Shown piece after piece: positions 5,076-26,725 of a stretch of DNA of 64,000 nucleotides (its first letter is position 1; each line of letters opens with the position of its first letter). The notes beneath the pieces were generated by a model, which was given only the letters and a program-made list of their open reading frames with translations, made no database searches and had not been told where the DNA came from. The stretch comes from Macrostomum lignano (lineage: Eukaryota): contig NIVC01003781.1 of NCBI GenBank assembly GCA_002269645.1, positions 13,075-77,074 of the forward strand, read 5' to 3'. A program made the position numbers and the translations under genes.

Positions 5076-5659
5076 GGTTTGATCCAGAAGGTCTTCTATT
5101 CTAAATCTGGATTAAATCTTGTTCAGAATGAGATTAGAACAATTCTAGATCTATATCCGATCTATATTGTGTCCGCATGTGATGTACTTCTAAATGGAAT
5201 CTACTTGTTATCTTATTGTAGTATTTGTAATTTTGTCCTGCTAAATTTCGCCCCCTGCCCTGTGCAAAGTATTCCTTCGCTTAATATTCCATCCTTATTT
5301 AGCCATTTATACATTATAGCATTATACAATAGGCGCAAGTGTACCGCACGTGACCCCAAAAGCTCCCTCACCGCCGCGTGTCTCTTGGCCAGCTTTAATC
5401 AGCGAGTTTTCCAAGACACGCACAATTACCTTTGTTTAACCTTTTTTCGATGGCTTTTCCATGGCTCGACTGCCGAGAGCTGTGAAATTTCTGTGGCAGA
5501 CTCTGTCTCCGAAGCCGTCAAATTAAAATTTCTACTTCAAGGCCAATGAAACGCTTTACATGATTATTTGAATTATCAGGCTGCTTATTCAAAATCTCAA
5601 AGCTACTTGATTTTTTGTTCGTTCATTTCTACTCTCAGTAGTATTTCAAGATAGATTCT

Positions 5660-6325
5660 GTGAGAGTCATCAGCATTCTGTGAGAGAAACATCAGCATTC
5701 TGTGTGAGAATCATCAGCATTCTGAGATAATCATCAGCATTATGTGAGAATCATCAGCATTCTGGGAGAATCATCAGCATTCTGTGTGAGAATCATCAGC
5801 ATTCTGTGAGAATCATCAGCATTCTGTGAGAATCATCAGCATTCTGAGATAATCATCAGCATTATGTGAGAATCATCAGCATTCTGTGAGAATCATCAGC
5901 ATTATGTGAGAATCATCAGCATTCTGGGAGAATCATCAGCATTCTGTGTGAGAATCATCAGCATTCAGTGTGAGAATCATCAGCATTCAGTGTGAGAATC
6001 ATCAGCATTCAGTGTGAGAATCATCAGCATTCAGTGTGAGAATCATCAGCATTCTGAGATAATCATCAGCATTCTGTGAGAATCATCAGCATTCAGTGTG
6101 AGAATCATCAGCATTGTGTGTGAGAATCATCAGCATTCTGTGAGAATTATCAGCATTCTGTGAGAATCATCAGCATTCAGTGTGAGAATCATCAGCATTC
6201 TGAGATAATCATCAGCATTCTGTGTGAGAATCATCAGCATTCTGAGATAATCATCAGCATTCTGTGTGAGAATCATCAGCATTCAGTGTGAGAATCATCA
6301 GCATTCTGTGAGAATCATCAGCATT
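5660..6325. repeat. 20-22-bp minisatellite (GAGAATCATCAGCATTCTGT)n
   Basis: Direct reading. Confidence 0.96.
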
Positions 6326-8274
6326 TTTGCAGCGCAAATTCACAAGAAAATTCTTGCCCCATTTCGGGTCGTGTGGCGTGGGTTTGGATCCTTCAAAGCT
6401 TGAGCTGTTCCCATCGCCCTATTGTGAGTTGAGAGCAGATGAAAGGATCGTAGTTGGGTGCCTTGACTCAAAAGCGAAAGAAAATTGACTCAAAATTTTT
6501 TTTCTTTCAAGTCAACTTTTGCTAACCAAACTTCTGCCGCCTCTTCTACAGAGCAGCGGCCTCAGCAGAGCCATTGTCTAACAAACTCTGGGTTGGAGCA
6601 GAGGCGCAGAGTTTTTCAGTGTAGGCAGGGTTGAAGCCCTGAGCGACACGCTTGGTAGATTCTCCAAGGTTCTGCCAGTAGCTTAGCCTGGCCTAAGGAA
6701 CTCAACAATGTCTGCACTGTATGGGTGGGGGCTGCCAGTCCCAGTGACTGCGGAGCAGCCATGCGCTGTCCTACTGGATTCTCAGAGAATTTTGCTCCAG
6801 TTCTCCACCAATAATTTCTGGAAGTTATTGCTTTAGTAGCTCTCTCGTTTGGCAGAGAGCTTAAGAAATGCTAGTAGAGCGCAGAGGTCACCCGGACAGG
6901 TAAAAAGTAATCACCGACTCGGTGATCAAGCGTGCGGCAAGCGCTATGTCAGCTGAAAACAGCACTGCGTCTGTGTCAGACAATCTCTGCCCGAGTCTCT
7001 GAAGAAGAAGAAATTTCGGCTAAAATGAGTTACACTGATTTTAATTTTTAACTAACCGAATGTCTTCGCTATTGTCTGTTGTCTCACACCTTGTCTGGTG
7101 TTATACCTGTTGTCTGCTTGTAGGGAGTGAAGTGAAATAAGGGATCCACCATAAAGTAGTTTTTTCTTTTGTTCTTTTTTAAGCTTATTCATCAAAAAAA
7201 TAAAAGGGTTGCTATAAATGCAAAGAATTTCATATACTAAAATTGATAGTGTGACTAAGATGTTTATTGAATTGATGGTAAGGCTAGTTCAAGGATTAGT
7301 TTACTTTTGCTTTTTAGGTGTTGGATGAGTTTTATAATTACAAATGGAATGTTAAGGATGCTCTTGTAGTTGTTTGCTGTTCTATCTGCAAAATAAACAT
7401 ATTTTGTAATCATTGAAGCAGGTTTTAACTCGATCGATTCCTCAAACAATTCATTTGAGGTATGAGGTGTTTTTGGAATTTTTTTTTGCTGACGCTTGGC
7501 TTTGGCTTCATTTTTTGTAAGTTTGTAACATCTTTATTTACGAGCATTTGTATAAAATTAGTTTTTATTTCACCATAATTTAGGCCTTAATGCACACTGA
7601 TTTATAACTGAGAAATGTGCCAGCATTGTCAGGCGCGAAAATTCAGTTCCAGGCGCGAAAAAAATCGGTGCAGCTGAGTGGGACCAGTGAAAAAGTCAAA
7701 AACCAAGGTTTTGGCATTACTCGTACCGCTCGCCGAATCTCGTTGCTGTAGGACCCGTTGAAGTTTTTCCAAGCAGTCTGTCTGGATTTCACTGTGACGC
7801 AGCGAGAAAACTGATGTTGATGACTAATTTCAATGTGAAAGACTGCTTTTCAGTGGGATGATATCCAGTTTTAACGCTTAGGATGTGTCAACTTACATTA
7901 CGAGCTTAGCTTAAAGCCAAGGAGTAGGCTGATCACCCTCACAAATTAAAGAAACCAATGACTCACTGATGAATTGCTTGCCAAGATTAAATATTAGTGC
8001 GATCGTTGAGACGTCAGATTCTTCTAAATATTTTAATATTAATTTCTTCTTTAAACATGAAAACAGGTGATTAGATTTTAGGCTGGGGAAAAACTTAAAA
8101 ATTTTCAATTTAAACCTTTGAGTTCTGAAAAGTATTTGATAACCAGAAGCAAACGGAGGTCTGCAGTTTGGGAACAGCTCAATGAATCTTCATCCTAAAT
8201 ATCAAATCATATTGCGGCTTCTCAAGCCAAAGCCGCAATGCTGGGGGCTCCCAGAGCCAGTCTGCGATGCGGAC

Positions 8275-8994
8275 TCAGTCGAAGGGCGACACGCACTCGC
8301 AGAGGCCGAAGCTGGCCGATGTCAGATCCGTCAGGCCGTCCCTGCCGTTCAGAGCGGCGAGCTTGTCCTGCCCGCCGTTGTCATCTGGCTCACCGGAATA
8401 CCACAGGCTCGGGTCAACGGTGATGTTGCAGCCGACCCAGTACCAGCCGCCTGCCGGCTCCTCGCTGCCGGGAGCCTGGAAACCTCCGAGCCACAAATTG
8501 TTACCATCACGAAGCGACTCCACGTGGCTCATCTCTGAGCTGCTCGTCACGTCCGCCATGATCACCAGACCGCTCTCCGACTCGCATGTCGATTTTATGA
8601 CGTCCCACGAGCCGCTGACCACCTTGTACTTGACTCCACACAAGTCGTCTCCGTATCCGGGCGGACACAGCAGTCCCGCCGGCAGTCCCGGCTGCTGCCT
8701 CACGAACACCCGGCCTCGTCTCGAGCAGCCGCAGTCCCTCACAGACTTGCTGCACTTGTTGAACTCGAACAGCTGACACGGACCGTCGGACAGGCTGAAG
8801 GCCTGGCACTGCGGCCTCAGGCCACACAGGATGGCGCACTGCTCCTCAGACATCACGCCGTTGAGTGTCCTCACAAACGGACTGCTGATGCACAGGGAGC
8901 CGTTAATGGGCGCAAACTCGGTGCCGCACAGAGCAGCCGCCACAACCGCAGCTGTCAGCCCTAACATAGCGAGATGCACAAACACGGGGCGCAT
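8275..8994 (-). CDS. Secreted PAN/apple + C-type lectin protein, copy 1 (239 aa, intact, EPD motif)
   Basis: Signal peptide; PAN-like CAILCGLRPQCQAFSLSDGPCQLF; long-form CTLD with CPPGY, WLGG, W.W, WYSGEPDD and terminal LCEC. Confidence 0.88.
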   Translation of the reverse strand: MRPVFVHLAMLGLTAAVVAAALCGTEFAPINGSLCISSPFVRTLNGVMSEEQCAILCGLRPQCQAFSLSDGPCQLFEFNKCSKSVRDCGCSRRGRVFVRQQPGLPAGLLCPPGYGDDLCGVKYKVVSGSWDVIKSTCESESGLVIMADVTSSSEMSHVESLRDGNNLWLGGFQAPGSEEPAGGWYWVGCNITVDPSLWYSGEPDDNGGQDKLAALNGRDGLTDLTSASFGLCECVSPFD

Positions 8995-9722
8995 GGTGGC
9001 AGCTCTCTACTAGCCTGCTCTGAACGGAGCGGAAATCCTGGCTTGGGTTTTCCTGCTTCACCTGTTTTTTTCTCTTGGTTTTGCGCGGCACAGTTTGTTG
9101 TGACAACCGCCTGCATTTTATCATTGGCTGCCGCCGCTGTAATTGCCGATGAGATTCCCGCTGCCGGACAGTCTTCTTTTCCGCTAGGCTCTACTTCTGA
9201 GTAGTGCATAGAGATGTCTATGGACTGCTTATGCAATACTCGTACATTATTGATACTAGGCTGAAATGCGAGTACGTTTCGTTGCTAGGAATACATTTGT
9301 TTCTACTCAGTGTGAGCTTCTCAAACGCTCAAGTTAGGAAGTTTCCCAGCTGCCGAAACTGATGCAGCATGCCTGCCATCTCACTGGCAGCTGTGTATAC
9401 TACGTGAGCTAAGCACATTCACTCAGCCCCGATGCCAGGATTTCACTTTCAAATGGTTGGGATGGAAACTGCGTGTTAGTGCTTCTGTCAATAATTCAGA
9501 ACGAGGCACCTGGGGTACCGAGTGCAGAAACACTTCTGTTACAAAGCAATAAAAAAGTGATGCGGGCATCAGAACAGCAGGATGACGCCGTTCAAAACCT
9601 TCAGCTTTGAGTTTTTTGCAGCGAATCCAACCAATTTACTCGTAGTTGCTCAAAAGATAGTGCAGTAACCCGGCTCGGTTCGTGTGCCCAGCCCAAGTTT
9701 CTGATACTATAAGGTGGTACAA

Positions 9723-9908
9723 ACAGGCGTGATGACGCTCTGCCAATGCTACATGAATACTGACAGGCGTGATGACGCTCTGCCAATGCTACATGAATAC
9801 TGACAGGCGTGATGACGCTCTGCCAATGCTACATGAATACTGACAGGCGTGATGACGCTCTGCCAATGCTATATGAATACTGACAGGCGTGATGACGCTC
9901 TGCCAATG
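9723..9908. repeat. 40-bp tandem repeat, about 4.5 copies
   Basis: ACAGGCGTGATGACGCTCTGCCAATGCTACATGAATACTG repeated. Confidence 0.95.
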
Positions 9909-10863
9909 CAGAGTGTGTTGCGACACTCTCTGGTGCTTATACAGTGGTTCAGTATAAGTAAAAGTATATGATGGTATCCGCTCTCACGGCGTAATCACGT
10001 TCTGGCAAGAAGTTACTGTAGCTTCTTATCTATCCCTGCCTAACAAGCTTTCTGGAAAAGAAGGAATACTCAAAGCAGGCGGCTTACCAGTGCCCGAGGG
10101 CTGCTGAATGCGCTTTTATTTGAGTTCTCAACGACGGCGATAATTTGCCGATACCCGGGCCGGACTCGCTCGCAGGTCTCAGAGCGGTGCATGACTGGCT
10201 GATCTTTTGGCTTTAAGTCGATGTCTACTATTTACGACAGTATCGTACTTCTCTGGCCCGTTCTGGGGCTTAGCTAAAGTTCTTTGCCTACTCTTAACCG
10301 AATCTGTTTCTGAGAATTTCTCAGACCGCTGTGAGTCGTTCGGCGTCACAAAAAAGGCCGGGCGCAAAATAGAAAACAAGGGGGAAGGGAGACGGAGACG
10401 GCGCAGTGCGAGAAAAGGGCACACGATAATACATAGCAGCTCAGGTCTTGGAGGGGGGCTGACGGCCCACCGGCTAAGCCGACAAAATAGAGACACGCAC
10501 CGGCCAGCCAATCAAAACCCCGTCTGGGGGAATGAGGGTGCTGCACCCGCGCCAAAGCCGGCAGCTGGCGGCAGCCAACCAGCCCAGAGCACGGGGCAGG
10601 GCGCACGGCTGGGGAGGGGCACGCACAAAGCCCAGCGGCCCGTCAGACCTCGCCACGCACGCCAACCCCCCCCCCCCAGTCAGCCCCAAAGTGCATCGCG
10701 CCCTGTAAAAAAACAAGGGCACATACACTACAATAGTAAACCCCTTATGAGATTTAAGAAAGTCAACCGCAAGCACATTCCCGTAAGTGCCTGTTTGCTC
10801 TTTGTCTTTTCCATTTTTAGACAGTCCGGTGGGAGTTTTACTTCACTTTTTAGATTTCCGATT

Positions 10864-11576
10864 TCAGTTGAATGGCGACTGGCACTCGCAGAGGCCGAAG
10901 CTGGCCGATGTCAGATCCGTAAGGCCGTCCCTGCCGTTCAGAGCGGCGAGTTTGTCCTGTCCACCTTTGTCATTTGGCTCATTGGGATGCCACAGGCTGC
11001 TGTCTATGGAGATGTTGCAGCTCAGCCAGTGCCAGCCACCGCTGGGTTCGATGCTACCTGGAGCTTGGAAGCCTCCGAGCCACATGGGACTTGAGCCTGT
11101 GTGCAGTGACCGGATCTGATTCACTTGGGTCAACTCCTCCGTGCTCGTCACGTCCGCCATGATCACCAGACCGCTCTCCGACTCGCATGTCGATTTTATG
11201 ACGTCCCACGAGCCTTGTACTTGACTCCACAGAAGTCGTCTCCGTATCCGGGCGGACACAGCAGTCCCGCCGGCAGTCCCGGCTGCTGCCTCACGAACAC
11301 CCGGCCTCGTCTCGAGCAGCCGCAGTCCCTCACAAACTTGCTGCACTTGTTGAACTCGAACAGCTGGCACGGACCGTCGGACAGGCTGAAGGCCTGGCAC
11401 TGCGGCCTCAGGCGGCACAGAATGGCGCACTGCAGCTCCGAAGCGACTCCAGCGAAGGTTCGGACAAAGTCGCTATTGATGCACAGGGAGCCGTCGATCG
11501 GAGAGAACTTGGTGCTGCACTGTGAGGCAGCGGCTGCTGCAGCCGCAATCACCCAAATCGCTAGGCGGACCAGCAT
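10864..11576 (-). pseudogene. PAN + C-type lectin copy 2, frameshifted by a 10-bp deletion
   Basis: ORFs 11196..11576 and 10864..11430 together give the full paralogue. Versus copies 1 and 6, GCTGACCACC is missing between 11214 and 11215 (CGAGCC|TTGTAC). Confidence 0.85.
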
Positions 11577-11657
11577 CTTGCAGCTGCCTGTCTGCCGCGG
11601 TCTGACGAAGACGCCTTCTCATGCGAATCTTCCTTTCTATGCTCGCCAGCTAAATTA

Positions 11658-11671
11658 GTTGCCATAGCAAC
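11658..11671. promoter_or_regulatory. RFX X-box GTTGCCATAGCAAC, about 82 bp upstream of the lectin copy 2 ATG
   Basis: Exact fit to the RFX/DAF-19 consensus GTNRCC(N0-3)RGYAAC; the identical 14-mer lies upstream of copy 5. Confidence 0.65.
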
Positions 11672-11749
11672 AGCGCCCAACTGCTGCCTTTGTCTGCCAC
11701 CAATCAGGTTCTGACTGAGTCCTCATTTCAGAAAATCTGTCTCTGGCAC

Positions 11750-11908
11750 AGGTGCACTACCGGTCTTCACTACCGGTCTGCACTACCGGTCTGCACTACC
11801 GGTCTGCACTACCGGTCTCCACTACCGGTCTGCACTACCGGTCTGCATTACCGGTCTCCACTACCGGTCTGCACTACCGGTCTGCACTACCGGTCTGCAC
11901 TACCGGTC
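11750..11908. repeat. 13-bp minisatellite (CTGCACTACCGGT)n
   Basis: Direct reading. Confidence 0.95.
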
Positions 11909-12585
11909 CACTCATAACATTTCGGCACAGAACATGTCATCAAAGTACTTATAACTAAGAAATCCAATTTCTGCTATTTTTCAATTTTGACGCAGTCGTC
12001 TACAGGCTCAATATGCTTGAATCCGTGTACGCCGAACTAGGAATACATTCTACTGAATCCGCAGCTCTGAAGGACCTGCTGCAGGTGTTTGAATGGCTCC
12101 CAGGCTTCTGCGGATGCATTGGTTCTTGTCTTCTGCTTTCGGCATCTGTTGCAGCATTTCTAACTGCATAAAAAGCCAGTCTGCAACAGAACTGCTTTTG
12201 CCCGATAGATTGGCTGCTGAAATGCATCATGAAACGAGAAAAAGCGAACTGCTGCAGGCTGCTTCAGTGGTAATGCAACACGGTGCTTGTGAGAACGGCA
12301 TTCTCCTGTTTTTTAAGGTAAAACAAACGCCACGATGGAGAGTGCCTCAGAATTCTCAAGGAAACCACACTGCCCCCATCCAAGGTGACGAGTTTTGCTT
12401 GTAGCAGCAATCGTCTCGCTAAACAATGCTGTTTGCAGATATCGAGTTTTAGCTTCAGCAAATAATTTGACTCTCTTCCCGCATGTAGGGCTACTCTCTT
12501 CTCCGTCCACGCACGCGTCGTTTGTACTTTTATCTTATCTCAAAATATTGTAGAAATAAATACAAAGATAAATACAAAAGCTGCT

Positions 12586-13690
12586 CTTAACTTAAGTTAA
12601 CTTAACTGTGGGGCTGTTCCGGAGGGGACACAGCGGGAAGGCTAATCCCCGAACGGCCGACGCGTCGCTATGGACGAAGGGTTGGCGCCGCCCAGGGAGG
12701 TCCCCCAGTGTCGCCAGCAGCTATAGTGCTCTCTGAAAAAGAGAGTTCAGCCCTGCTGGTGGCCCAGAGGTAGCGCATGAGCTGATTAAAAGTGTGGCCT
12801 GGAGGTAAGTGAGTCTGGCTTGCATGAAGGTAGGACAGATGCGGACGGAATGTTCAGCGGTTTCGTCACCTTAGTTACAAAAGCTGCACAGGCGTTGGTG
12901 GTGTTGCCCTGCAGGTACTGGTGCCTGCAGAAGCAGCCGTGACCCGAGAGGGCAGCCCGGATGTCTCTTCGCGAGAGGCGCAGGAGGAGCTTCCGGAGCT
13001 GGTGAGAGGGCTGAGGGACAGCGCCTCTGGATTGCCTGCAGGTAGTGCAGTTCGCCCAAGCTGAGCGGTGCTGGGTCCTGATCCACGCCTTGATGCGCGA
13101 GTTGATGACACAGCCAGGAATCGGGACAAGGGGTTCGGGGCCGAGAGAGGAGCCGGAGGCACCAACTTTTGCAAGGATGTCAGCCAACTCATTTGCTCGG
13201 ATCCCCACATGCCCCGGAACCCACTTAAGGGTTATTTTGTTGGTGGAGCGCAACATGTTGAGGAGTTTGATGCAGTCGAGGACTGTAGCAGAGTTGGTGC
13301 TGCAGCCACTGATGGCGTGCAAGGCAGCTTGGCTGTCCGAATGGAAAATGATGTTCTTGCCGGTTACGCCAGTGGCGAGAAGCTCTGCAGTGCAGGAGCT
13401 GATGGCGAGAACTTCATTTTGGAAGACACTGGAGTTGACCCCAGTATACTGAGCGTGGTTTGCGATGACCCTCCCGTTCAGGAAGATCCCAAAACCAAAG
13501 CTGGTGTTGACTGACTGCTTTAAACCATCGGTGGTAGCAGTGGAGCTCACCAGGGTTCCAGTGGTCATTGATGGTATCGCGCGGGTCGATAGCTACGGAG
13601 TAGCGTTGTCTCAGATTGAGCGTTGAGGCAATGCCATCGGTGAAGACGCGATTGGCCTGACACTCGTTGAGAATGTTGAGGCACAGGTCA
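12586..13690 (-). mobile_element. 5'-truncated non-LTR retrotransposon 3' end with RNase H and CCHC knuckle (I-group, LOA/Lian-like)
   Basis: VFTDG, SVFQNEVLAI, FHSDSQAAL and WVPGHVGIRANELADILAK are RNase H motifs; downstream frameshifted CSFCN*GDETAEHSVRIC; short TAAGT-like tail near 12586-12606. Confidence 0.85.
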
Positions 13691-14121
13691 CATGGGATGG
13701 GAACTGCAAAGATCCACTTGGAAACTGCAAAGATCCATTTGGAAACTACAAAAATCCGTTTAGAAACTACAAAAATGATTATGTGAGATGAGATTGCACG
13801 CAGTGGAATTTTGCTCATTCCGTCAGCAGAGCCAGTGCAAACGCAGACTAAAATCCAACACACTGGAACAGGCATTTGCTCCAGTGCAAGATTGCAATAC
13901 ACACAATATTCCTAGCACAATGCTTCGCTCATGGTCGAAAAGGCATGCACAAAAGCGTCTAAACTTTCACAAATTGTGAATATTCTAAAATTTTTTTTTA
14001 GGTTTAAATGACTCCAAAATTTTGTAGAAAACTTTTAAGTGAGAGTTGAAGCCACAATGGAGTCACAGCTCAGTGCCAGCCAGCCCAGCCGAGTGAATTC
14101 ACGGTCACTCCCTGCCGAGCT

Positions 14122-14883
14122 TCAGTCGAACGGGGATGCGCACTCGCACAGGAACCGGTCGCAGCCTGAGTAGCCTTCCGGCATGTCCGTGAGATATTTA
14201 AAGCCCGAGAATCGACCGAGCCAGTGCTCTTTGCCTCCAGAATCATTCGGTTCGCCAGAGGCCCACAGGCCGGCGTCCACGGTGATGTTGCAGCCGACCC
14301 AGTGCCAGCCGCCTGCCGGCTCCGCGCTGCCGGGTGGCTGGAAGCCTCCGAGCCACATCGAGCTGCCGCTGGCGTAGAGAGACCGCAGCGACTCCACGTG
14401 GCTCATCTCTGAGCTGCTCGTCACGTCCGCCATGATCACCAGACCGCTCTCCGACTCGCACTTCTGCCGGCTCGTCTCCCACAGTTTGTCAGCGCTGTTG
14501 TAGACCTTGTACCTGACTCCACACAGGTTGTCGCCGTATCCGGGCGGACACAGCAGTCCCGCCGGCAGTCCCGGCTGCTGCTTCACGAACACTCGGCCTC
14601 GTCTCGAGCAGCCGCAGTCCCTCACAGACTTGCTGCACTTGTTGAACTCGAACAACTGGCACGGACCGTCGGACAGGCTGAAGGCCTGGCACTGCGGCCT
14701 CAGGCGGCACAGAATGGCGCACTGCAGCTCCGAAGCGACTCCAGCGAAGGTGCGGACGAAGTCGCTGTTGATGCACAGGGAGCCGTCGATCGGAGAGAAC
14801 TTGGTGCTGCAGACCGGATCCCGAGTTGATTCATCCGCAGCAGCAACTGCCAGAACAGTCAGAGCCAGGAGCACGGACAGCAT
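14122..14883 (-). CDS. PAN + C-type lectin copy 3 (253 aa from the ATG at 14883, intact, EPN, unique C-terminus)
   Basis: Signal peptide MLSVLLALTVLAVAAA follows the ATG at 14883; the upstream ORF extension does not look like signal or domain sequence. Same architecture as copy 1. Confidence 0.88.
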   Translation of the reverse strand: MLSVLLALTVLAVAAADESTRDPVCSTKFSPIDGSLCINSDFVRTFAGVASELQCAILCRLRPQCQAFSLSDGPCQLFEFNKCSKSVRDCGCSRRGRVFVKQQPGLPAGLLCPPGYGDNLCGVRYKVYNSADKLWETSRQKCESESGLVIMADVTSSSEMSHVESLRSLYASGSSMWLGGFQPPGSAEPAGGWHWVGCNITVDAGLWASGEPNDSGGKEHWLGRFSGFKYLTDMPEGYSGCDRFLCECASPFD

Positions 14884-15379
14884 GGTGTTGCTGTCAAAGC
14901 CTGTTCTGCTCAGCTTGTGCCGCTCAGCCTGGGTGCCGTGGCACCATTTATCAGAATTCACTCCCTGCAATGAGATTCAATGAGATTCAATGAGATCCTC
15001 ACGGCCCCTCATTGGCTGCTATGAGCATTTTTGTTCTGGTTGGTTTCCTGAGACCGTGAAAGTCCGTTTGACTGAATGAGTCAGGCAGAGCAACAGCCCT
15101 CAGGCCGGAAACTTGCTTGCACCGAGTCAGACAACCATTATCGCTCATTGCAACTGGCCATGAATAGAAGCCCTTTGACTTAGAGATGCTTTGAAAGCTG
15201 GAGCTGCTCAGACTGGTTCTCACTCTGCCCCTTAGCGCAGCTGGAGCAGGAAGAGATCCAAGAGCTCTGCAAGTGGACTAAGTGGACTAAGTGTTCAAAG
15301 GGAATGTCATGTCAAGTCTGTCATTGTTCTACCCGGCAAGAAAGTCGGCGTGAAGGCGCTCACGACCGTGATGGTACGG

Positions 15380-16030
15380 GTGTACATTGCGTACGCCCTC
15401 TGTAAATCGAAATTGAAACGAAATTGAAACATTTAGCCAGCAAGTGACCGGTGCTCTTGCTCTCAAACCCCCGTTTTGACTGCCTAGGAGGTTGGACGCC
15501 TAAGCCTCTGTCGCGCTCTATTTATTATCTATCTTATCTTATCTACGAGCCCAGCCTTCGTCTAGTTCATTCAAACTCCAATCGTACTCGCCATCGAAGG
15601 TGAAGGTCCAACAGCCCCTGGTCCTCGCCGCTGCACATGGTGTCGAACAATGATGTTACGGTGCAGGATCGGCAGTTCCGCCTGCCCGAGCAAAAGTACA
15701 ACGCGTTTAACCGTAAGCTGCTCGCCTTGTATCTGGTTGTCCGGCACTTCCGCTACGCCCTCGATGTCCAGCACGTGGAAGACAAGGATAACCCGGTCGC
15801 GTACGCGTCACGGTCGCTTTGGTGCAGCTCCGGCTGCCGGAAATTCCATCAAGAGGTCACCCACCAAATTCAGCGGTGGCCACCCACCACCGGCCGCTCG
15901 ACATGACGGCAGCCAACTCGCCGGTGCAGACCAACAACGTTTGATGCATGGCTCAGTGCTTGGGGGGGGGGGAGCGTGTGGCGGCTAGGCATGCCTGTGA
16001 CCGGTGCTCGTGCACTCAAACCCCTGTTTG
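15380..16030 (+). mobile_element. Internally deleted Gypsy relic
   Basis: EQKYNAFNRKLLALYLVVRHFRY...VQHVEDKDNPVA resembles Gypsy RNase H; CA|TGGTGTC PBS-like junction near 15636; G-rich PPT then TGTGG near 15961-15982; direct repeat GTGACCGGTGCTC.TGC.CTCAAACCCC at about 15444 and 15997. Ends uncertain. Confidence 0.6.
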
Positions 16031-16189
16031 TTTTTTTGATCCGGACAGTCAGTTTTAAAACAGATACAGCATGTCCCAGACACCCAGGTAACAGCAACGT
16101 AATAAATTGCATTTTTCGGAGTTCAACTCAAAGAACTAAATGTACTTTTAGCAAACAGAAATAAAATACAAGAATACAAAGAAGACAAA

Positions 16190-18300
16190 ATTCAGTTTTC
16201 AGTTTCCCATCTCATTTTTTCTAAGGATCGATACGGAACAATACCCCATTGTAGTCGCTGGATGCGAGCCTTCGGAGCTGTAAAAACTGCTCCCCTCAGA
16301 ATTCCAGTGTGCATCGGTGAGATTAACTGAGCAACGCTTTTTACATTATCCGCGGCGGATCTCCAAACAAAAGACCTCGACGTTCGAAGTCTTGCATCCT
16401 CGCAGGGAAAAAGTTGAAGGATAAAGACAGCAGCAGGGGTCCAAGCAGCGCACGAAGGAAGCTCGCGCCTGAGAGCTACAGGCCGTCGGCTGTTACAGCT
16501 CGGTCTGCACAATGGTCGCGCCAGAAACCAGGACTGGGTGCCATAGGAACCTGTGCTAGCAGTCGGAGCGTCGTTGAGGCTATGAGGCGAAACTCGAGCC
16601 GGTCTTCTTTCGAGCTTTGCAGAATGATACCTCCCGCTTTTGTCAAGCACAACGCAATGTCGAGCACGGGTTCGTCATGAACCGGCACCCGGTGGTGCTG
16701 CTCGGGAATAGCGATGGCGATCTCCAAGAGCGCACGTAGCAGCGGCTTGGCAGGTTTGGCCACCTTGCAGAACCGGCTCAGCTTTCCTACCCGATCCTAA
16801 AGGCAATGATTTTGCAGGCTTCTTGCCCTCACGCAGTCCATTCTACCTGTCGACAGGTAACGACAGCTGGCTGGGCTGAGCGCCTTGGACCAATTGCTCT
16901 CAAAGCCGAGCCGCTGCAGGGTGGCCAAGAGAAACTCTTGCAGCACCCGGTAAACCTCATAGTCTCTCGCTGTGATGCAAAAGTCGTCCAGATAAGCTAT
17001 GATGGCAAAGTTAGATAGTTGCAAACGCAGCCGAAAGATTCTGACTGACTGACCAGTAGATTTGAAGCGGCAGGTCGACACCCGTGACCTCGTAGCAGTC
17101 CGGGTGTACTTCAACACCTCGGTAGTCATGGCGAAGGTCGATCTTGCTGAGGAAACAGCCTGGCGCCAGCAACCCAGTGAGTTCCTCGACGTTGGCGAAC
17201 TTCTGCTTCTGGCAAGGCTTGCACGGATCGTCGATGCTGCGGTCTTGAGGCATTGCCGATCAGGCCAATGGCTCCATCTGCTTTGGCGATGGCACCGAGT
17301 GGGCTGATGATGGTCAGCCTGGCAATGCCGAGGTCAGTCGCGCTGATGTAGCACCTGGCCAGCATCTCTTCTCGGATCTGCTTGTCAAGGGTGTGCCGAT
17401 TTTATTCGCAGCGGGGTGTTGATTCTCAAGCTGGGCGTCACCAACCAGGACAGAATCTATGATGCGAAAGCCATCACGGATACAAGTGCTTAAAAATTCA
17501 GTGCCGGAGTCACCACGCTAAACCGGTGTCCGGGCAGATGATGGCAGTGACCAGCAGTTGGCTCGGAAGCAGGGTGGGCGGTGATGTCAGCAGGGTGGGC
17601 GGTGATGTCAGCAGGGTGGGCGGTGATGTCAGCGGGGTGAGCGGCAAAACGAGCATGATAACCGCAGCAACTTAAGATATTTGGTCGCTTAGCAGACCTT
17701 ATTGGCTCATTGCTAAAACAGGGTCTGCTGCGGCCCCGCCTCGGTGCTCAGGTTTTTGGTCCAGAGGCTCCCGAACGTGCTGAAGCCTTGAGTGGCTCCA
17801 CTTGCAGATGCGTCAGATGTGAGCGAATTTGCAGTTGTTTCTGTGGCAACCTTTGGCGCTATTGAACAGGCCGCAAATTATCTGTCCAGATGCTCCACTG
17901 CTCTGCTCCGTTACCTTGGACTCCCTGACTGACGGCCACTTGGCCAGCAGCTCGCAGATTTTTAGGGACCGTCAGGCGCTTCAAAATCGTGTTCAAGTTG
18001 CGCTGTCGCGAGTGCTGCAGCCGCCTCATGTCTCGATCGTACTTAACCAACAGCTCACCAGTGTGGATATTGAAGCTGGGGTAGGTTAGCTTCTTGAAGT
18101 TGAGCTCTTCATGCGCGCCCGGCGTCACCAACTGCCCAGTCTCCAGGAGCTGAGGAGCTTCTGCATGATACGCGCTGCATGGCGTTCCTGCGTCAGCCAT
18201 CCTCCCGACTACAGCTTCTCATTCAGAAAGTCGGCCGGGGATGAGCTGAGCAGTGCTGCAGATGGTTGCAGCCAAATCATACTTGAGCTGCCGACCCTGG
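16190..18300 (-). mobile_element. Decayed DIRS/Ngaro-type retrotransposon (gag, RT and RNase H remnants)
   Basis: Fragments LLAPGCFLSKIDLRHDYRGVEVHPD, IIAYLDDFCI...LQRLGFESNWSKAL and AKPAKPLLRALL...HHRV match DIRS-like RT/RNase H; upstream LLVKYDRDMRRLQ resembles DIRS/Ngaro gag. Many frameshifts; no tyrosine recombinase seen. Confidence 0.65.
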
Positions 18301-18915
18301 CCCCCGAACAGGCTGGAGTGAATGCCCGGCTTTTCGCTGGCTGGCAAGCAGCGCTTTGGCTTCGCTCCGGGTCGATTGGATCTCTTTTCACAGCTGGTCT
18401 CAGCCCTTTTGAGGGCTTACACAGTCATGCTGTTAAGATTTTGCTTCATTGTGCAGCGCGAGGCTGGTGAGGCAGTCAAAAATAGCAGATCCTTTAACAA
18501 GCGTCTCATTGCATTGTTGCATCAGACGCACCACTGGTAAATGGAGTTCCAAGAGGCTGTCTTCAGAGTGAATCTGTTGTGTCTATTGTCTATTATTCTA
18601 TTCAATGTGTCAGAGTTTAGAAATCATTCAAATGCACTACAAGCACAAACACTAGCGTTTTTTGTGTCAATCATGCTCGGTTCTTAGGCCAAACAAGAGA
18701 TCCTTTCAGTCAAGTTGATCGGATTTCTAAGTGCGAATAAAATGTTAGGAATATTTTTAATACATCAAACAGATTCTTTAAAATATTCTACAAACTACTA
18801 ACACCATGAAAGACATTCAGTAAAGACACATATAACTTCACGCGAAAATTACTGAAATAACTTGAAGTATGTCTGAAAAAAGCGATTCTGTGCTGTGAAT
18901 TTCTGTTAGTTACCT

Positions 18916-19029
18916 GCCATTGGCTCACCACAGGCCGGCGTCCACAGCAATGTTGCAGCCAAACAAGAAGCGACTCCACGTGGCTCATCTCTGAGCTGCT
19001 CGTCACGTCCGCCATGATTACCAGACCGC
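18916..19029 (-). pseudogene. Orphan fragment of the lectin family (copy 4)
   Basis: Contains GAAGCGACTCCACGTGGCTCATCTCTGAGCTGCTCGTCACGTCCGCCATGAT.ACCAGACCGC (GLVIMADVTSSSEMSHVESL) joined by deletions to NI.VDAGLW-like sequence. Confidence 0.85.
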
Positions 19030-19842
19030 ACTGTAGAGATTTCCAAACATAGTAGACTACTAGAAATAGTAAGATAAAATTATAAATACAAATTTAAAAA
19101 TAGCAATGCGTCATACTCTATTTTTAGTAATTACCAGTAATATCACGAAAACAGCGAGAGACTATTCTAGCACAAATTGTTCTCAACATCTATTTTCAGA
19201 ACTTCCAAATATGGTAAATGTTAATCTGAATGCCACCCAAGTCTCACCCTTTTCTATTCAAAAACCCCACCTGTCAATACCTGACCTTACCTGATCAGTA
19301 GATTTTGAATTCGAGGCCTCCCTATTCCTAAGGGAGTGGATAGGATCTGCGGACCGATTCCGATACTCTTAGAGGATTATTGATTTGATTGATTTTGGCA
19401 CCCTAGAGTAACCGATAGGAGCACACGACTCCGATTCCGTTATTTCTAGAAGAAGACGCCCTTTTCTGGAGGACCTCGTCATTGTTAGAGTTGACTTTGC
19501 TAATACGGCGCATCTCTGATTTCTGCACTCGAGAATACTTTGACGCCGACGGGTTAAATTGTTACGCTCTCATATTCGGCCGATTCTCAGAACACAAGAA
19601 GACAACTCCGGAGGAAGACTACGAGCTCTACAAACCCGCCCGCCCGAGGTCTGGAAGTGGGAGTTCGTGCGTTTAGACACTAGACTTAATTCTCTCTCCT
19701 ATTCTCTTTCTCTCTCTCTCTCTCTAGTGTGCTAAAGCGAACTCTTCAGCATGTCGACTTTTTCGGCTGCCTGGCTTCCCTGGGTCTCGACACCAGGACA
19801 TCCGCGTGAAAGCTATGAGAGGGTTAGGGGGTTAGGTGTTCC

Positions 19843-20400
19843 TCATCAACATCAGCATCACCATCAACAACAACAGCATCATCAACATCAGCAACATCAG
19901 CATCAGCAACATCAGCATCAGCAACATCAGCATCAGCAATATCAGCATCAGCAACATCAGCATCATCAACAATAGCATCATCATCAACAACATCATAATC
20001 ATCATCCACAGCAACATCAACATCAGCATCAGCAACATCAGCATCATCCACAGCAACATCAACATCAGCATCAGCAACATCAGCATCAGCAAAATCAGCA
20101 TCAGCAACATCAGCATCATCCACAGCAACATCAACATCAGCATCAGCAACATCAGCATCAGCAAAATCAGCATCAGCAACATCAGCATCATCAACAACAG
20201 CATCATCATCAACAACACCATAATCATCATCCACAGCAACATCAACATCAGCATCAGCAACATCAGCATCAGCAACATCAGCATCAGCAAAATCAGCATC
20301 AGCAACATCAGCATCAGCAACATCAGCATCATCAACAACAGCATCACAATCAACAACAGCACCATCATCAACAACAGCATCATCATCAACAACATCATTA
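19843..20400. repeat. Compound CAT/CAA/CAG trinucleotide low-complexity tract
   Basis: Direct reading; explains the poly-ISN, DADV and MLL ORFs. Confidence 0.95.
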
Positions 20401-20627
20401 GCGAACATCTTTATGCTGCTCCTCTAGCTTGGACTATGCTCCGAGTATACGAGCTCACCTTAAAGCCAAGGAGTAGGCTGCGCACTCGGACAAAATTAAT
20501 CCAAAAACAATGACTCATTGGTTTATTGCTTGCCAAGATTAAATATTGTTCGACTGATAAGCATCAGATTTTTCTCAAGCCAAAGCCGCCATGCTGGGGG
20601 CTCCCAAAGCCAGTCTGCGATGCGTAC

Positions 20628-21362
20628 TCAGTCGAAGGGCGACACACACTCGCAGAGGCCGAAGCTGGCCGACGTCAGATCCGTCAGGCCGCCACTTCCG
20701 GACACGGCGGCGAGCTTGTCCTGCCCGCCTTTGTCATTTGGCTCACCGGAATGCCACAAATCGGCGTCCACGGTGATGTTGCAGCCGACCCAGTACCAGC
20801 CGCCATCAGGCTCCGCGCTGCCGGGTGGCTGTAGGCCTCCCAGCCACAGAGAGTTGCCATCACGAAGCGACTCCACGTGGCTCATCTCTGAGCTGCTCGT
20901 CACGTCCGCCATGATCACAAGACCGCTCTCCGACTCGCACTTCTGTCGGCTCGTCTCCCACAGTTTGTCAGCGCTGTCGTAGACCTTGTACTTGACTCCA
21001 CAGAAGTCATCTCCGTATCCGGGCGGACACAGCAGTCCCGCCGGCAGTCCCGGCTGCTGCCTCACGAACACCCGGCCTCGTCTCGAGCAGCCGCAGTCCC
21101 TCACAGACTTGCTGCACTTGTTGAACTCGAACAGCTGGCACGGACCGTCGGACAGGCTGAAGGCCTGGCACTGCGGCCTCAGGCGGCACAGGAGGGCGCA
21201 CTGCAGCTCCGAAGCGACTCCAGCGAAGGTTCGGACAAAGTCGCTGTTGATGCACAGGGAGCCGTCGATGGGAGAGAACTTGGTGCTGCACTGCGAGGCC
21301 TCATCCGCTGCTATTGAAGTTGCCAGACCTGCAGCCAGGCACAGCAACAGCAGGGAACTCAT
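20628..21362 (-). CDS. PAN + C-type lectin copy 5 (244 aa, intact, EPN)
   Basis: Signal peptide, PAN-like domain and CTLD as in the other copies. Confidence 0.88.
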   Translation of the reverse strand: MSSLLLLCLAAGLATSIAADEASQCSTKFSPIDGSLCINSDFVRTFAGVASELQCALLCRLRPQCQAFSLSDGPCQLFEFNKCSKSVRDCGCSRRGRVFVRQQPGLPAGLLCPPGYGDDFCGVKYKVYDSADKLWETSRQKCESESGLVIMADVTSSSEMSHVESLRDGNSLWLGGLQPPGSAEPDGGWYWVGCNITVDADLWHSGEPNDKGGQDKLAAVSGSGGLTDLTSASFGLCECVSPFD

Positions 21363-21473
21363 GGCAGAGCAGAGGCTGGCTGTCTGCTTCCCTGACTGTT
21401 TTGGCCGAAGAGCGCTTTGTTTCCTTCCTTTATCCCTAACAGGGTTCTCCTTTCCAGCTGCTGTTGTTTCCTA

Positions 21474-21487
21474 GTTGCCATAGCAAC
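21474..21487. promoter_or_regulatory. RFX X-box GTTGCCATAGCAAC, about 112 bp upstream of the lectin copy 5 ATG
   Basis: Identical to 11658-11671, while the surrounding upstream sequence is largely unrelated. Confidence 0.65.
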
Positions 21488-22402
21488 GGTTAGGGAGTCT
21501 CGCGCGGCTTGTGGCTTAATTTGATTGCGAGGCGCAGTCTGGATTGACAGCTTCGCGACCTCATAGGGGCTTAGCTGAACTCGCACTGGAGTGCCTCTGC
21601 ACATCAAGCTCTGCATTCAGTCGTCAAGCTGCTGCCAAACGTCATTTCATTGTTGCAATGAACTCACCCCATCGAACACGGCCCTGTCAACTACTGATAG
21701 TTTGGCCTCTGCTCAGCCACTCATTATGAATATCTGGCCTCGTTCAAAGCTTTTCGTCTAGGCCAGGGTCAACATCTGAGGTTGCAAACTGACATTTTAG
21801 AAGCGTACCCGGCACCCCAGAGGAGATGTCTCACTGTGTAATCTCAAGTCTCTCAACAAATGCCCTGATCTCAAAATGTCACCAGCTGTAAGAACAATAA
21901 AAAATACAACTACCACCACAACAACAAAAGCAAAAACATAAACTACTACATCAAAAACATCAACAACTGCATGCTGCCCATCCTCGGCAGCTTGTCTAGT
22001 AGACTCGGTCTGAGAACACACGCACTGCAACATCATCGACGACACGATAAGAAATTAAAAAACGACATCAATAAAAGCAATAAGAAACGCCAGCAGGAAG
22101 TACAACGAAACTCTGAGCTCTGCCTGCCCCCTGCTATTACGGTGCCTGCAGCTCCTTCTAGGGCGGAAGGCGGTGGGCAGTACGACTCGGCGTTGATGAT
22201 GAGGCCTGCCAGCTGGAGTCCCCAACCGTGCGATGACAACTCACTCGGTCACGGCGCACACGAACTTCTTCAACCACAATTAGGCCATTGCTGAGGCAAT
22301 GAAATTCTTGTGGCAAACTCGTTAGCAGAGAGTTATAGTTGATGTAGCTTGAGCCACTTGGATTCCCACTTTTATATTAGTTTTATAATGTAAGCCTCGT
22401 AC

Positions 22403-22703
22403 GGCTTGTAGCCAAGTGGTTTCGAGCGTCGGACTCACGACTTGAAGGTGGGGGGTTCGATTCCCGGTCCCACTGGAACAATTTGTGTCCTTGATCAAGA
22501 CACTTAACTCTGCATTGCTTCAGTTCACCCAGCTGTAAAGTGGGCACCAGCATTAGCTGAGGTAATTGAGGGTGTGTGTGGCGACCCCCCAGTCCTTGGA
22601 CTGAACAGCCGTACGCAGCCTTCAGATGCGCTGCGCAATGGCTGCGGCTGAGCTGTCGTTGCACATCTACTGCCCATTGGGGGCATGTGTAATCAATTAT
22701 ATT
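22403..22703 (+). mobile_element. tRNA-derived SINE (Deu/Nin-domain-like body)
   Basis: A box TAGCCAAGTGG (22409), B box GGTTCGATTCC (22454), body GTGTCCTTGATCAAGACACTTAAC...CAGTTCACCCAGCTGTAAA, ATT-type tail; second copy near 41.1-41.4 kb. Confidence 0.8.
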
Positions 22704-23273
22704 GTAAACTGTGCGTACGAATTATTTATGATGCATTCACGCATGGAGTGCTTCTCTGTAGTGTGTCTTCACCCACCAGCTGAGTCCGCTCAGTTTGATT
22801 GGGTAAACTGCTGTGTCAGCAGAGACTCCTGCCAAGGGCGGAGGTTTTAGAAAGTTTTCCTGCACTGCTGTCAGGCGTGCGGGCTGTCAAAAACTCTTGA
22901 ACTCAGACATCAAATCGTAGGCTGCCTTAACATCTGAAGTCAAATTAATCAGTAACCGCTTTGAGTAGTATGAAAAGCAAATTCTCAAGAAAGAATTTAA
23001 CATAAAAAACTAGTTTGCAGATTTGCAAAAATGTCTGCTTTTGATTTCGCTGCTCAAATAGTTTATGAATGCGTTTTTCGGGGCCAAGCAGTCACTGGGG
23101 CACCCAGTTGTCACATGGGGAATTTTATTCTGTCTACTTCAACTCGCATCGGCTTTTTTCAAGTTGTGCAGCTGCATCTGAAAATTTTACTGCGCGTTTC
23201 TCAGCAGCAGGATGAGAGCCAAACGTTCTTAAAACTTTTGCTTACTTGCGTTGATCTTCTTCAAAGAGGAATT

Positions 23274-24002
23274 TCAGTTGAATGGCGACGCGCACTCGCA
23301 GAGGCCGAAGCTGGCCGATGTCAGATCCGTAAGGCCGTCCCTGCCGTTCATAGCGGCGAGTTTGTCCTGTCCACCTTTGTCATTTGGCTCATTGGGATGC
23401 CACAGGCTGCTGTCCATGGAGATGTTGCAGCTCAGCCAGTGCCAGCCACCGCTGGGTTCGATGCTACCTGGAGCTTGGAAGCCTCCGAGCCACATGGGAC
23501 TTGAGCCTGTGTGCAGTGACCGGATCTGATTCACTTGGGCCAACTCCTCCGTGCTCGTCACGTCCGCCATGATCACCAGACCGCTCTCCGACTCGCATGT
23601 CGATTTTATGTCGTCCCACGAGCCGCTGACCACCTTGTACTTGACTCCACACAAGTCGTCTCCGTATCCGGGCGGACACAGCAGTCCCGCCGGCAGTCCC
23701 GGCTGCTGCCTCACGAACACCCGGCCTCGTCTCGAGCAGCCGCAGTCCCTCACAGACTTGCTGCACTTGTTGAACTCGAACAGCTGGCACGGACCGTCGG
23801 ACAGGCTGAAGGCCTGGCACTGCGGCCTCAGGCGGCACAGAATGGCGCACTGCAGCTCCGAAGCGGCTCCAGCAAAGGTTCGGACGAAGTCGCTATTGAT
23901 GCACAGGGAGCCGTCAATCGGAGAGAACTTGGTGCTGCACTGCGAAGCGGCAGCAAGTTTCAAAAACAACGCAGTCGCTTGCAGCAAAAGCAGCGAGTGC
24001 AT
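23274..24002 (-). CDS. PAN + C-type lectin copy 6 (242 aa, intact, EPN)
   Basis: Same architecture; closest to copy 2 over the CTLD and 3' flank. Confidence 0.88.
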   Translation of the reverse strand: MHSLLLLQATALFLKLAAASQCSTKFSPIDGSLCINSDFVRTFAGAASELQCAILCRLRPQCQAFSLSDGPCQLFEFNKCSKSVRDCGCSRRGRVFVRQQPGLPAGLLCPPGYGDDLCGVKYKVVSGSWDDIKSTCESESGLVIMADVTSTEELAQVNQIRSLHTGSSPMWLGGFQAPGSIEPSGGWHWLSCNISMDSSLWHPNEPNDKGGQDKLAAMNGRDGLTDLTSASFGLCECASPFN

Positions 24003-25059
24003 CGCGATGCTGTCTGTCGCTCTGGAATAAGCTCTGCCTAGCTTGGAGCTCTGAGCTCCGAGTCCGCTTTATCTGCTGCTTTCTAAATTTCTTAGTATTT
24101 GCTACTGGGTCAGCATCCAGCTGTTTTTACAGCCTCAGCTGCCAGGGGCAGAGTTTCTTCCTAATGTAAAATGCAGTCGCTTTTTCGCTCGTGCTGCTGC
24201 ATCAATTTCTGTTCATCGTCCGTTGATTTTTTTTTAAATGCGAGACAACAGATGCGAATTCGATGTTTGGCCAGCAGCAGTCTTGGCAAGTGTAACCTCT
24301 CAGATGCTAGTATTTGCCTTCACGAAAATTCTGAGCCTAACTTTTGCATTGAGGTGCAAAGCAAACAAGCAAAGCCAGGAAGCAGTGATGCTAAAAAGCA
24401 TTGGCTAACACCTGTCTGTCTCATCTGCTGAACAAAGATAGATGAGATGAGCTGACTGTGCTGTCACCATTCAGTCATTTTCAGTAGTTCTCACCGATTT
24501 ACAGGCCCGTTAGTGTGGACAGTGGGCAGATCAAGGTGGGTGATGAAGACTGGTGAAATCTGCCAATATTGACTGGCTGCAGTGACGGCAAAGGCAGAAG
24601 GACGCTTTGCTGGCAAATTGGGTTCATCGGAGGCTGGTTTTTGTTTCAAAATGCACTATTGACTTTATCAAGTTTGAAAAGTCTTTTGAAGTAGTAGATT
24701 GAAGACCTGAAAATCAAAAAATACAGGTTGTGTTCTCTAAACGGTTTTTGCACGGATTTCGGATCTCGTTGTGTGCACCCTGGCGCACTTTGAGCGACAT
24801 TGTCACACAACTGGCGAGAGGCATTACTGCCCATTCCGCCGACTCCCCTGAGCAGGCACACAAGCGTGCGGATACGTACGCAGTCATTCGCACAGGCACA
24901 CACTCACACAGGAGTGTACAGCAGCGGCCCAAAATTTTTTTCATCGGTAGGCATGTACGCTTCACTGTGCCTGGGGGGGGGGTTGGCCCTCAAGGGTGTT
25001 AATTGCATGAGCAGAGCCAAGCCAGGATTCCAAGTTGGCCCCAAATCAATGTGACTGCA

Positions 25060-26410: not shown

Positions 26411-26725
26411 AACAACAACAACAACAAAATGCGCTGCCCCGCATGCAAGGTCACAGCTAGAGCAGGGTGCGTCAGATGGCACGCCGCAGGGCCTGAGAGC
26501 TCCGCCCCGTTGGCAGTTGTTGTGTTCTAGTTGATTGATTAAATTCAATTCAGTTGGAGACACTTGAGTCTCGCTCAATATATTTATACTCATGTGCACG
26601 TTGAAAACAGTGTTACGCAATCGAAACAACGATACCATGATTGAACGCACGATGCATATAAGGTAATTGAACAATTCTAGCCTCAAAGTTAGTTAGTTAC
26701 AACACCTAGGCCCGATGCACAGTCA

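Follow-up and report, generated by a model that had tools for sequence, protein, structure and literature searches.

To what extent a cluster of mosaic lectin genes in the flatworm Macrostomum lignano reflects machinery for generating diversity, and to what extent the ordinary evolution of tandem duplicates, is the question raised by the locus analyzed here. The locus lies in a 64,000-nt stretch of contig NIVC01003781.1 (assembly GCA_002269645.1, forward-strand positions 13,075 to 77,074), which we call the window and to which all coordinates refer unless another contig is named. It is a 16-kb tandem cluster of six related elements on the minus strand (8275-24002), in which nearly identical and deeply diverged segments alternate within single genes. 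An earlier note on this DNA, made from the sequence alone, proposed a lectin diversification locus with variable modules reshuffled around near-invariant joints. We find it probable instead that germline interlocus gene conversion has acted here, in patches, on an old tandem array, the genes of which belong to an apparently lineage-restricted family of predicted secreted proteins combining a PAN/apple domain with a C-type lectin-like domain (CTLD). Interlocus conversion is a known process, met here in a new family, and the array is a clear but ordinary case of tandem-family evolution with no sign of dedicated diversity-generating machinery.

Gene copies and segmental homogenization

The array consists of four intact intronless genes (c1, c3, c5, and c6), one frameshifted copy (c2), and one relic (c4), and tblastn and blastn detected no further copies within the 64-kb window. 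The copies encode a signal peptide, the PAN/apple domain, and the CTLD, with a mature size of ~220 aa. The intact genes were delimited from their open reading frames (ORFs) and the alignment, with segment distances in addition for c1 and c3. These genes are c1 (8275-8994, 239 aa), which has a divergent PAN N-half and EPD replacing EPN; c3 (14122-14883, 253 aa counted from the first ATG), with a unique C-terminal module, KEHWL...GCDRF, and one additional Cys; c5 (20628-21362, 244 aa), the reference for our structure model; and c6 (23274-24002, 242 aa). In c2 (10864-11576), identified from the alignment and two overlapping ORFs, a 10-nt deletion near 11212-11216 destroys the frame directly after GVKYK, leaving a PAN-only ORF of 126 aa and the second, overlapping ORF. 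This copy is likely a pseudogene, or else would be a gene for the 126-aa PAN-only product. The relic c4 (~18928-19032, ~105 nt; tblastn/blastn and alignment) holds 63 nt of partial joint plus SSEMSHVESL, 98% identical to c1/c3, followed by ~33 nt that are c3-like (GCNI.VDAGLW); it carries an internal deletion, and its surroundings are AT rich. The six minus-strand elements and the uninterrupted, intronless coding are as first described, except that one of the five supposedly full-length copies, c2, is frameshifted. The signal peptides, said to differ completely, are indeed unalignable between copies as DNA, but a faint protein resemblance persists (MSSLLLL in c5 and MHSLLLL in c6; "AADE" in c3 and c5), which fits old whole-gene duplicates.

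To dissect the mosaic, we aligned the mature coding sequences of the five longer copies (641 ungapped columns, of which 187 are variable and 81 informative). Read from the 5' end, the PAN N-half sets c1 apart from c2, c3, c5, and c6 at ~30/105 nt. It is followed by block B (LRPQCQAF...CGVKYK), a segment of ~190 to 213 nt comprising the C-half of the PAN domain, the linker, and the opening strands of the CTLD. Delimited by silent-site distances, block B lies at 8611-8823 in c1, 11212-11414 in c2, 14494-14706 in c3, 20973-21185 in c5, and 23622-23834 in c6. It is near-invariant among copies and carries few copy-specific singletons, mainly those of c3. A pre-joint module, at which c1, c2, and c6 part from c3 and c5 (split 126|35) with a 9-nt indel, leads to the 45-nt joint (CESESGLVIMADVTS), where copies show 0 to 1 differences. 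Segment distances place the joint at 11143-11187 in c2, 14416-14460 in c3, 20895-20939 in c5, which has one silent difference, and 23553-23597 in c6. In c1 the joint (8542-8586; distances, max-chi2, and model) is the point across which the gene switches from c6-like to c5-like. The post-joint segment separates c1, c3, and c5 from c2 and c6 (split 135|26), and the C-terminal segment separates c3 from all other copies, indels included. All of these groupings agree with the earlier description. The abruptness of the transitions is plainest between c1 and c2, which show 0/24 differences in the pre-joint module, 0/45 in the joint, and then 53/150 directly downstream.

The main signal, stronger than topology, is this extreme variation from segment to segment in pairwise and silent-site distances. 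The proportion of silent differences (pS) among copies is 0.00 to 0.12 in block B and the joint, so the near-identity of both, even at silent sites, is borne out; it is 0.57 to 0.97 between module types in the adjoining segments and 0.37 to 0.58 for the rest of the gene. Against the distant relatives L001 and L002, pS reaches 0.56 to 0.62 in block B and 0.63 to 0.95 in the joint, that is, saturation; the values for these two segments among the copies are 0.02 to 0.11 and 0 to 0.10. Identity within the array therefore reflects recent homogenization rather than nucleotide constraint, and this comparison of silent sites shows that block B and the joint lack constraint at the nucleotide level.

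Formal tests likewise call for segmental gene conversion or recombination between copies, as had been proposed. In the pairwise homoplasy index (PHI) test, the observed value was reached in 0/5000 permutations, and a GENECONV-like longest-run permutation test gave p<=0.0044 in 8/10 pairs. The max-chi2 test places the c1 switch, from c6-like to c5-like sequence, at alignment nt 478, immediately 3' of the joint (p<0.0005), and a c5 switch from c3-like to c1/c6-like near alignment nt 630 (p<0.0005). The claim that the module groupings are mutually incompatible and that no single tree fits needs to be recast. Two of the five listed splits set off a singleton, and a single tree, ((2,6),1,(3,5)), accommodates 126|35 together with 135|26. 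In our alignment the true topological conflict is that between c1+c5 (14 sites, a common 12-nt deletion, and a common 3' flank) and c3+c5 (>20 sites and the 9-nt indel).

Comparison of the flanks gives the age of the duplications a different cast from that of the coding regions. In every pair, homology begins in the final few codons of the signal peptide and ends at the stop codon, and no spacer similarity was found even at word size 7, with the sole exception of the c1/c5 3' flank. Here, alignment pairs a proximal piece in c1 (8219-8274) with c5 20572-20627 (94.6% over 56 nt) and, beyond a ~190-nt indel in c1, a distal piece (7899-8028) with c5 20448-20578 (79% over 133 nt); the c5 flank matching both (20448-20627) is the array's only flank or spacer homology, and these flank pieces, too, are on the minus strand. 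Of the two 3'-flank groupings originally listed, that of c1 with c5 is confirmed, and that of c2 with c6 dissolves into 3 nt past the stop codon, with a local alignment score at shuffle level. Yet c2 and c6 differ at 12 of ~640 aligned nt (~98% identity) over the whole mature coding sequence, between flanks of chance similarity. Unalignable flanks around near-identical c2 and c6 coding sequences argue for old whole-gene duplicates whose coding regions have been intermittently overwritten by neighbors. As an age scale, the long terminal repeats (LTRs) of a neighboring gypsy element, at 94.5% identity, are less alike than block B among c1, c2, c5, and c6 (98 to 99%). One candidate, a two-gene segmental duplication of c1-c2 and c5-c6 suggested by their similar spacing (2591 versus 2649 nt), was rejected, the spacers being dissimilar even at word size 7.

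The history we propose begins with ancient duplications, as would be expected from spacers, untranslated regions, and signal-peptide DNA that no longer align and from unconverted segments saturated at silent sites. Germline interlocus gene conversion between same-orientation neighbors would later have overwritten parts of the mature coding region repeatedly, with unequal crossing-over possibly contributing. Tracts would begin and end in the segments kept most alike by purifying selection, block B and the joint, which, being near-identical at silent sites, may have served as homology anchors, and tract limits would be set by the extent of surviving homology. The intervening segments (PAN N-half, alpha1, alpha2, long loop, and C terminus) would thus persist as a few deeply diverged forms in varied combinations. 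Individual histories can be sketched accordingly: c2 and c6 appear homogenized across the whole mature coding sequence; c1 would resemble c6 between block B and the joint, both included, and c5 from the joint onward as far as 56 nt beyond the stop codon; and c5 would be c3-like to about alignment nt 630 and c1/c6-like thereafter. The direction and timing that such a sketch implies for the tracts, like the anchoring role of the joints, are ones we infer.

Mosaic divergence through interlocus gene conversion in tandem paralogues has been described for HMA4 of Arabidopsis halleri (bioRxiv 10.1101/2025.10.29.685298), and interlocus conversion is likewise treated in reports on Tigriopus GOT1 paralogues (PMC3728101) and Caenorhabditis paralogues (PMC3966223). 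The present array resembles these systems in its same-orientation tandem copies, its within-gene mosaic of homogenized and diverged segments, its significant conversion tests, the confinement of exchange to regions that retain homology, and the novel combinations of old variants. It is unlike them in that noncoding homology has been lost apart from the c1/c5 3' flank, so that the mature coding region sets the bounds of conversion, and in that the family, unlike HMA4, GOT1, and the Caenorhabditis cases, consists of PAN-CTLD lectins restricted to flatworms. The locus offers a compact, clean case of conversion acting on very old tandem duplicates, with near-zero beside saturated silent divergence inside 700-nt genes. 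There is also a practical consequence: trees, dN/dS (nonsynonymous to synonymous rate) estimates, and RNA interference or in situ probes for this family will mislead if the mosaic is ignored, and probes from block B or the joint would match every copy.

Domain identity and placement of the modules

The assignment to PAN and CTLD proves right, with the predicted CTLD being a divergent one. The window copies fall short of Pfam cutoffs, scoring 15 to 17 bits (E 0.01 to 0.04) or not matching at all for Lectin_C (cutoff 22.6) and scoring 9.7 to 15.5 bits for PAN_1, PAN_3, and PAN_4 (cutoffs 21 to 27). Full-length relatives do pass: P0045, P0072, P0078, P0105, and P0114 for Lectin_C and P0058, P0076, and P0105 for PAN_1. 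Compared with the PDB, the family profile matches CTLD chains at E 9.5e-6 to 1e-3, the best being mosquito mosGCTL-1 (9t9z, E 9.5e-6), with snaclecs, codakine, CEL-I, langerin, and DC-SIGN among the others, and these alignments span "CPPGY..CGVKY" to "W...EPN". Its N-terminal half matches Eimeria MIC5 (1hky) in that protein's PAN/apple domain (E 3.6e-4) and, at E 0.5, the N domain of HGF. The M. lignano protein P0024, annotated "Apple domain-containing," matches profile positions 11 to 130, which is this same half.

Structure prediction is consistent with these assignments. An AlphaFold2 model of c5, built from a 12-sequence alignment that included three distant relatives, reached a mean pLDDT (predicted local distance difference test) of 80.1 and a pTM (predicted template modeling score) of 0.77, with only 1/5 models good; a 7-sequence alignment gave a pLDDT of 32.6. 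A Foldseek comparison of the c5 model with the PDB returned 346 matches at E<=0.001, topped by the carbohydrate recognition domains (CRDs) of langerin, CEL-I, CD23, and DC-SIGN, with target TM scores of 0.71 to 0.80 and a probability of 1.00. No PAN structure was among the 50 fold-search matches listed, all of which were CTLD chains. The PAN cysteine pattern is present by inspection, and the model shows the helix-on-sheet secondary structure of the PAN type.

The likeness to mannose-type EPN CRDs (langerin, DC-SIGN, CD23, CEL-I, and mosGCTL-1) consists in the CTLD fold, W...EPN, the C1...C4 cysteines, and WLGG in place of WIGL. As in long-form CRDs, there is an N-terminal hairpin with an additional disulfide, C112-C121 by position. 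The cysteines C0/C0' (C112 and C121), C1 (C142), and the C-terminal CEC are present, as is a noncanonical Cys, C194 (VGCN), in 9/9 aligned family members. The differences are considerable: identity is 18 to 26%, the array CTLD lies below the Lectin_C cutoff, and a PAN domain is fused N-terminally. The cysteines C2 (EDC) and C3 (WND..C), and with them the C2-C3 disulfide, are missing in c1, c2, c5, and c6, c3 having its one additional Cys (GCDRF); WND has become LTD, with the Asp alone retained, and EDC has become QDK or KEH. EPN is kept in c2, c3, c5, and c6, with EPD in c1, and Ca2+-dependent sugar binding by a putative mannose-type (EPN) site is possible. The PAN half shares with the PAN/apple domains of Eimeria tenella MIC5, the HGF N domain, and the plasminogen/nematode family the spacing C..x3..C..x5..C-x-A-F...C-x-L-F and is unlike them in scoring under the Pfam PAN thresholds.

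Mapped onto the c5 model with the PDB alignments, block B covers the C-half of the PAN domain together with the linker and the first hairpin of the CTLD. The loop ahead of helix alpha1 and most of alpha1 make up the pre-joint module; the joint forms the alpha1 end and the buried strand "LVIMAD"; and the post-joint module, "SSEMSHVESLR" or "TEELAQVNQIR," is helix alpha2. The remaining CTLD consists of strand beta2, the long-loop region carrying EPN, and strands beta3 to beta5. In the model, therefore, the two modules whose alternatives separate most cleanly are surface helices on the lower lobe, alpha1 and alpha2, predicted to lie away from the canonical EPN/Ca2+ sugar site.

Weighing the alternatives

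Several points count against patchy conversion as we have described it. For c1, c3, and c5, the searched protein and contig collections contain neither an exact nor a near-identical counterpart, and the mosaics are seen in one assembly. At the protein level, constraint is also strongest in block B and the joint, which are invariant in relatives that are 45 to 54% identical, so that selection and conversion are confounded there and the silent-site contrast alone separates them. Five sequences with saturated dS (synonymous divergence) give little power for event order, tract ends, or positive selection, and conversion donors were compared among the window copies. As to function, the CTLD has LTD standing for WND and no canonical C2-C3 disulfide.

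An alternative close to the original proposal is a selected or programmed diversification locus, in which short-tract conversion around invariant joints, maintained by selection or acting somatically, would yield a combinatorial repertoire of lectins that recognize microbes or glycans. We regard this as unlikely. In its favor are the deeply diverged alternative modules, of which 3/4 possible alpha1 x alpha2 combinations exist among the copies, and the islands of divergence beside homogenized segments; such islands can mark selection against conversion, according to the GOT1 report (PMC3728101). The retention of EPN in four copies, with EPD in c1, points the same way, as do the minisatellites found in nearly all spacers, which are loosely like the repeat-rich Sp185/333 clusters as portrayed in a study of that family (PMC5103432). 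Against it, 126|35 and 135|26 are tree compatible, there are only five germline copies with few module types, and the modules that alternate most cleanly map to helices alpha1 and alpha2 rather than to the long loop of the sugar site. The variable modules have pN/pS (nonsynonymous to silent proportion) values of <1 (~0.30/0.60 post-joint and 0.54/0.75-0.97 pre-joint), which weakens the proposal to the extent that saturated dS and n=5 allow.

The systems invoked for such a locus, chicken immunoglobulin (Ig), the trypanosome variant surface glycoprotein (VSG), and sea-urchin Sp185/333 (SpTransformer; PMC5103432), do share with the array clustered paralogues, segmental exchange, mosaic element combinations, and repeat-rich spacers. 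Unlike chicken Ig and VSG, the array does not pair one expression site with silent donors: a bank of donor cassettes is lacking, and in its place stand four complete genes (each having a start codon and a signal peptide of its own) plus one frameshifted copy and one relic. It further differs from these systems in having no internal repeats or element-gap patterns, few module types, and pN/pS below 1. A dedicated diversification locus of this kind is thus not upheld, and there is no sign of programmed or somatic diversification. Patchy homogenization of old duplicates (concerted evolution) fits the data no less well than a reshuffling of variable modules does. A bolder version, in which block B and the joint are kept as recombination anchors and a limited stock of ancient modules (alpha1, alpha2, and long loop) is recombined among the tandem genes by short-tract conversion into a selectable, possibly somatically variable lectin repertoire, seems to us decidedly unlikely. 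If true, such an anchor-based repertoire would be a flatworm counterpart to the mosaic immune families of other invertebrates; the locus itself does not reveal a new diversification mechanism.

A very improbable explanation is that the mosaics arose during assembly or polishing, as chimeras of haplotypes or homeologues in a hidden-polyploid, repeat-rich genome or through short-read polishing toward a paralogue consensus. The lack of independent matches for c1, c3, and c5 would fit this, and assembly errors are made plausible by the line-dependent number of large-chromosome copies, M. lignano lines having 2n = 8 or 10 with varying large-chromosome copy number (PMC12732829). Polishing with mismapped reads might also be expected to homogenize precisely the most similar segments. 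However, the mature part of c6, including block B, the joint, and the module combination, is identical at 221/221 residues to the M. lignano UniProt entry A0A1I8HTM9, whose N-terminal gene model departs from the window. The copy c6 is therefore independently confirmed, and the artifact explanation concerns c1, c3, and c5. Moreover, unique, nonrepeated spacers and a signal peptide of its own for each copy should make long-read placement unambiguous, block B keeps its copy-specific singletons, mainly in c3, and module switches of 30 to 150 nt with in-frame indels would be unlike haplotype switch errors.

A single duplication tree without recombination, combined with very uneven selective constraint along the gene, is scarcely credible: block B and the joint are indeed the most conserved protein parts even in relatives that are 45 to 54% identical, and the two dominant splits do fit one tree, but this model is contradicted by the silent-site contrast, with adjacent segments 5- to 30-fold apart within the array at sites saturated against L001 and L002, as well as by the abrupt c1-c2 transition downstream of the joint, by the incompatible c1+c5 and c3+c5 site sets with PHI, run, and max-chi2 tests all significant, and by the c2-c6 coding identity between random flanks.

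Two further causes of silent-site similarity were considered and rejected. Codon bias or GC-biased conversion is one. GC content at third codon positions (GC3) is 0.72 to 0.95 in all window genes, and the divergent segment A of c1 has a pS of 0.57 to 0.74 at a GC3 of 0.80; GC3 is slightly higher in block B and the joint, an excess too slight to be decisive. Overlapping or antisense coding is the other. Plus-strand ORFs of 158 to 177 aa are open across each lectin copy (8182-8776, 11125-11658, 14507-14983, 20986-21474, and 23551-24030), and a second sense-strand frame is likewise open across each. These antisense ORFs follow GC3 and are shorter in L001, and the silent sites of distant relatives vary freely. 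The long antisense ORFs look like by-products of GC3-rich codons and would not be genes. Searching the window against Rfam detected no RNA families.

Relatives of the family and neighboring elements

Beyond the array, close relatives are few. A word-indexed search of 5.8 billion proteins found only 7, of which 5 are from M. lignano and the other two from one Logan and one JGI assembly, and a further such search, made to enlarge the alignment, likewise yielded just 7 proteins; in UniProt the M. lignano relatives are labeled "C-type lectin domain-containing." Searched exhaustively by HMMER, the family profile had 2157 matches at E<=0.001, mostly to the lectin half only, and its end-to-end matches form a set of ~240- to 270-aa proteins. 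Exact-sequence look-ups of c1, c5, c6, P0001, and P0007 in public assemblies gave no match. These results suggest a lineage-restricted family of PAN + CTLD proteins, presumably secreted and hitherto found mainly in Macrostomum. The suggestion that the array might be undescribed in this lineage has held up, as literature searches that included the UniProt accessions and Macrostomum gene conversion found no relevant paper on the family or the array. The family is thus an undescribed one in a flatworm model for regeneration, adhesion, and reproductive biology. Mlig-tuf2 (Mlig020807.g2-g5; PMC12732829) was an attractive candidate for the same family, having four copies under one Mlig020807 identifier, species specificity, and a weak CLECT match; it was rejected because its sequences are those of a different, much larger CTLD + Ig gene.

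Three M. lignano or related gene models deserve mention. A distant paralogue, P0012 (BOX15_Mlig021632g1; L003 10001-11386, GCA_002269645.1 NIVC01001858.1), is single copy amid unrelated genes. It has one ~600-nt intron, 1 to 2 codons ahead of the first Cys of the joint, that is, at the boundary between pre-joint module and joint, and the window copies are intronless. This position may hint at intron loss in the founder of the array, the chance of coincidence being ~10% by a rough estimate. The over-long model P0009 (3072 aa) contains, as one predicted protein, four repeats of a PAN-CTLD unit belonging to a related subfamily and may result from the merging of a tandem array into a single model. 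P0010 (811 aa, M. lignano), also over-long, holds one further paralogue with an identical joint.

The spacers of the array carry repeats of their own. Mutually unrelated minisatellites with periods of 13 to 42 nt and up to 37 copies occur in nearly every spacer (5655-6325, 9723-9909, 11753-11908, 13698-13773, 17568-17644, 19843-20397, and 21920-21972). A dispersed repeat of ~210 nt, 85% identical, is found in the c5-c6 spacer (22493-22700) and again at 41190-41393. Between c2 and c3 lies an ORF of 260 aa with an RNase H domain (12786-13568, E 8e-8), probably a retroelement fragment.

Just upstream of the array is the Ty3/gypsy LTR retrotransposon used above as an age scale (26481-30811). Its terminal repeats occupy 26481-26700 and 30594-30811, its pol ORF of 1094 aa (reverse transcriptase, RNase H, and integrase) spans 26726-30010, and 29902-30627 is occupied by a gag-like ORF that matches PNMA weakly. 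Farther along, three long uninterrupted minus-strand ORFs represent ordinary animal genes with a GC3 of 0.80 to 0.95: an ionotropic glutamate receptor (33066-36002, 978 aa), a leucine-rich repeat protein (49992-53225, 1077 aa), and a tubulin (54569-55933, 454 aa). A final ORF of 473 aa (60123-61544) is open on both strands, has Pfam matches of low-complexity or repeat type only (haemagglutinin repeat and histidine-rich protein), and is probably simple-repeat DNA.

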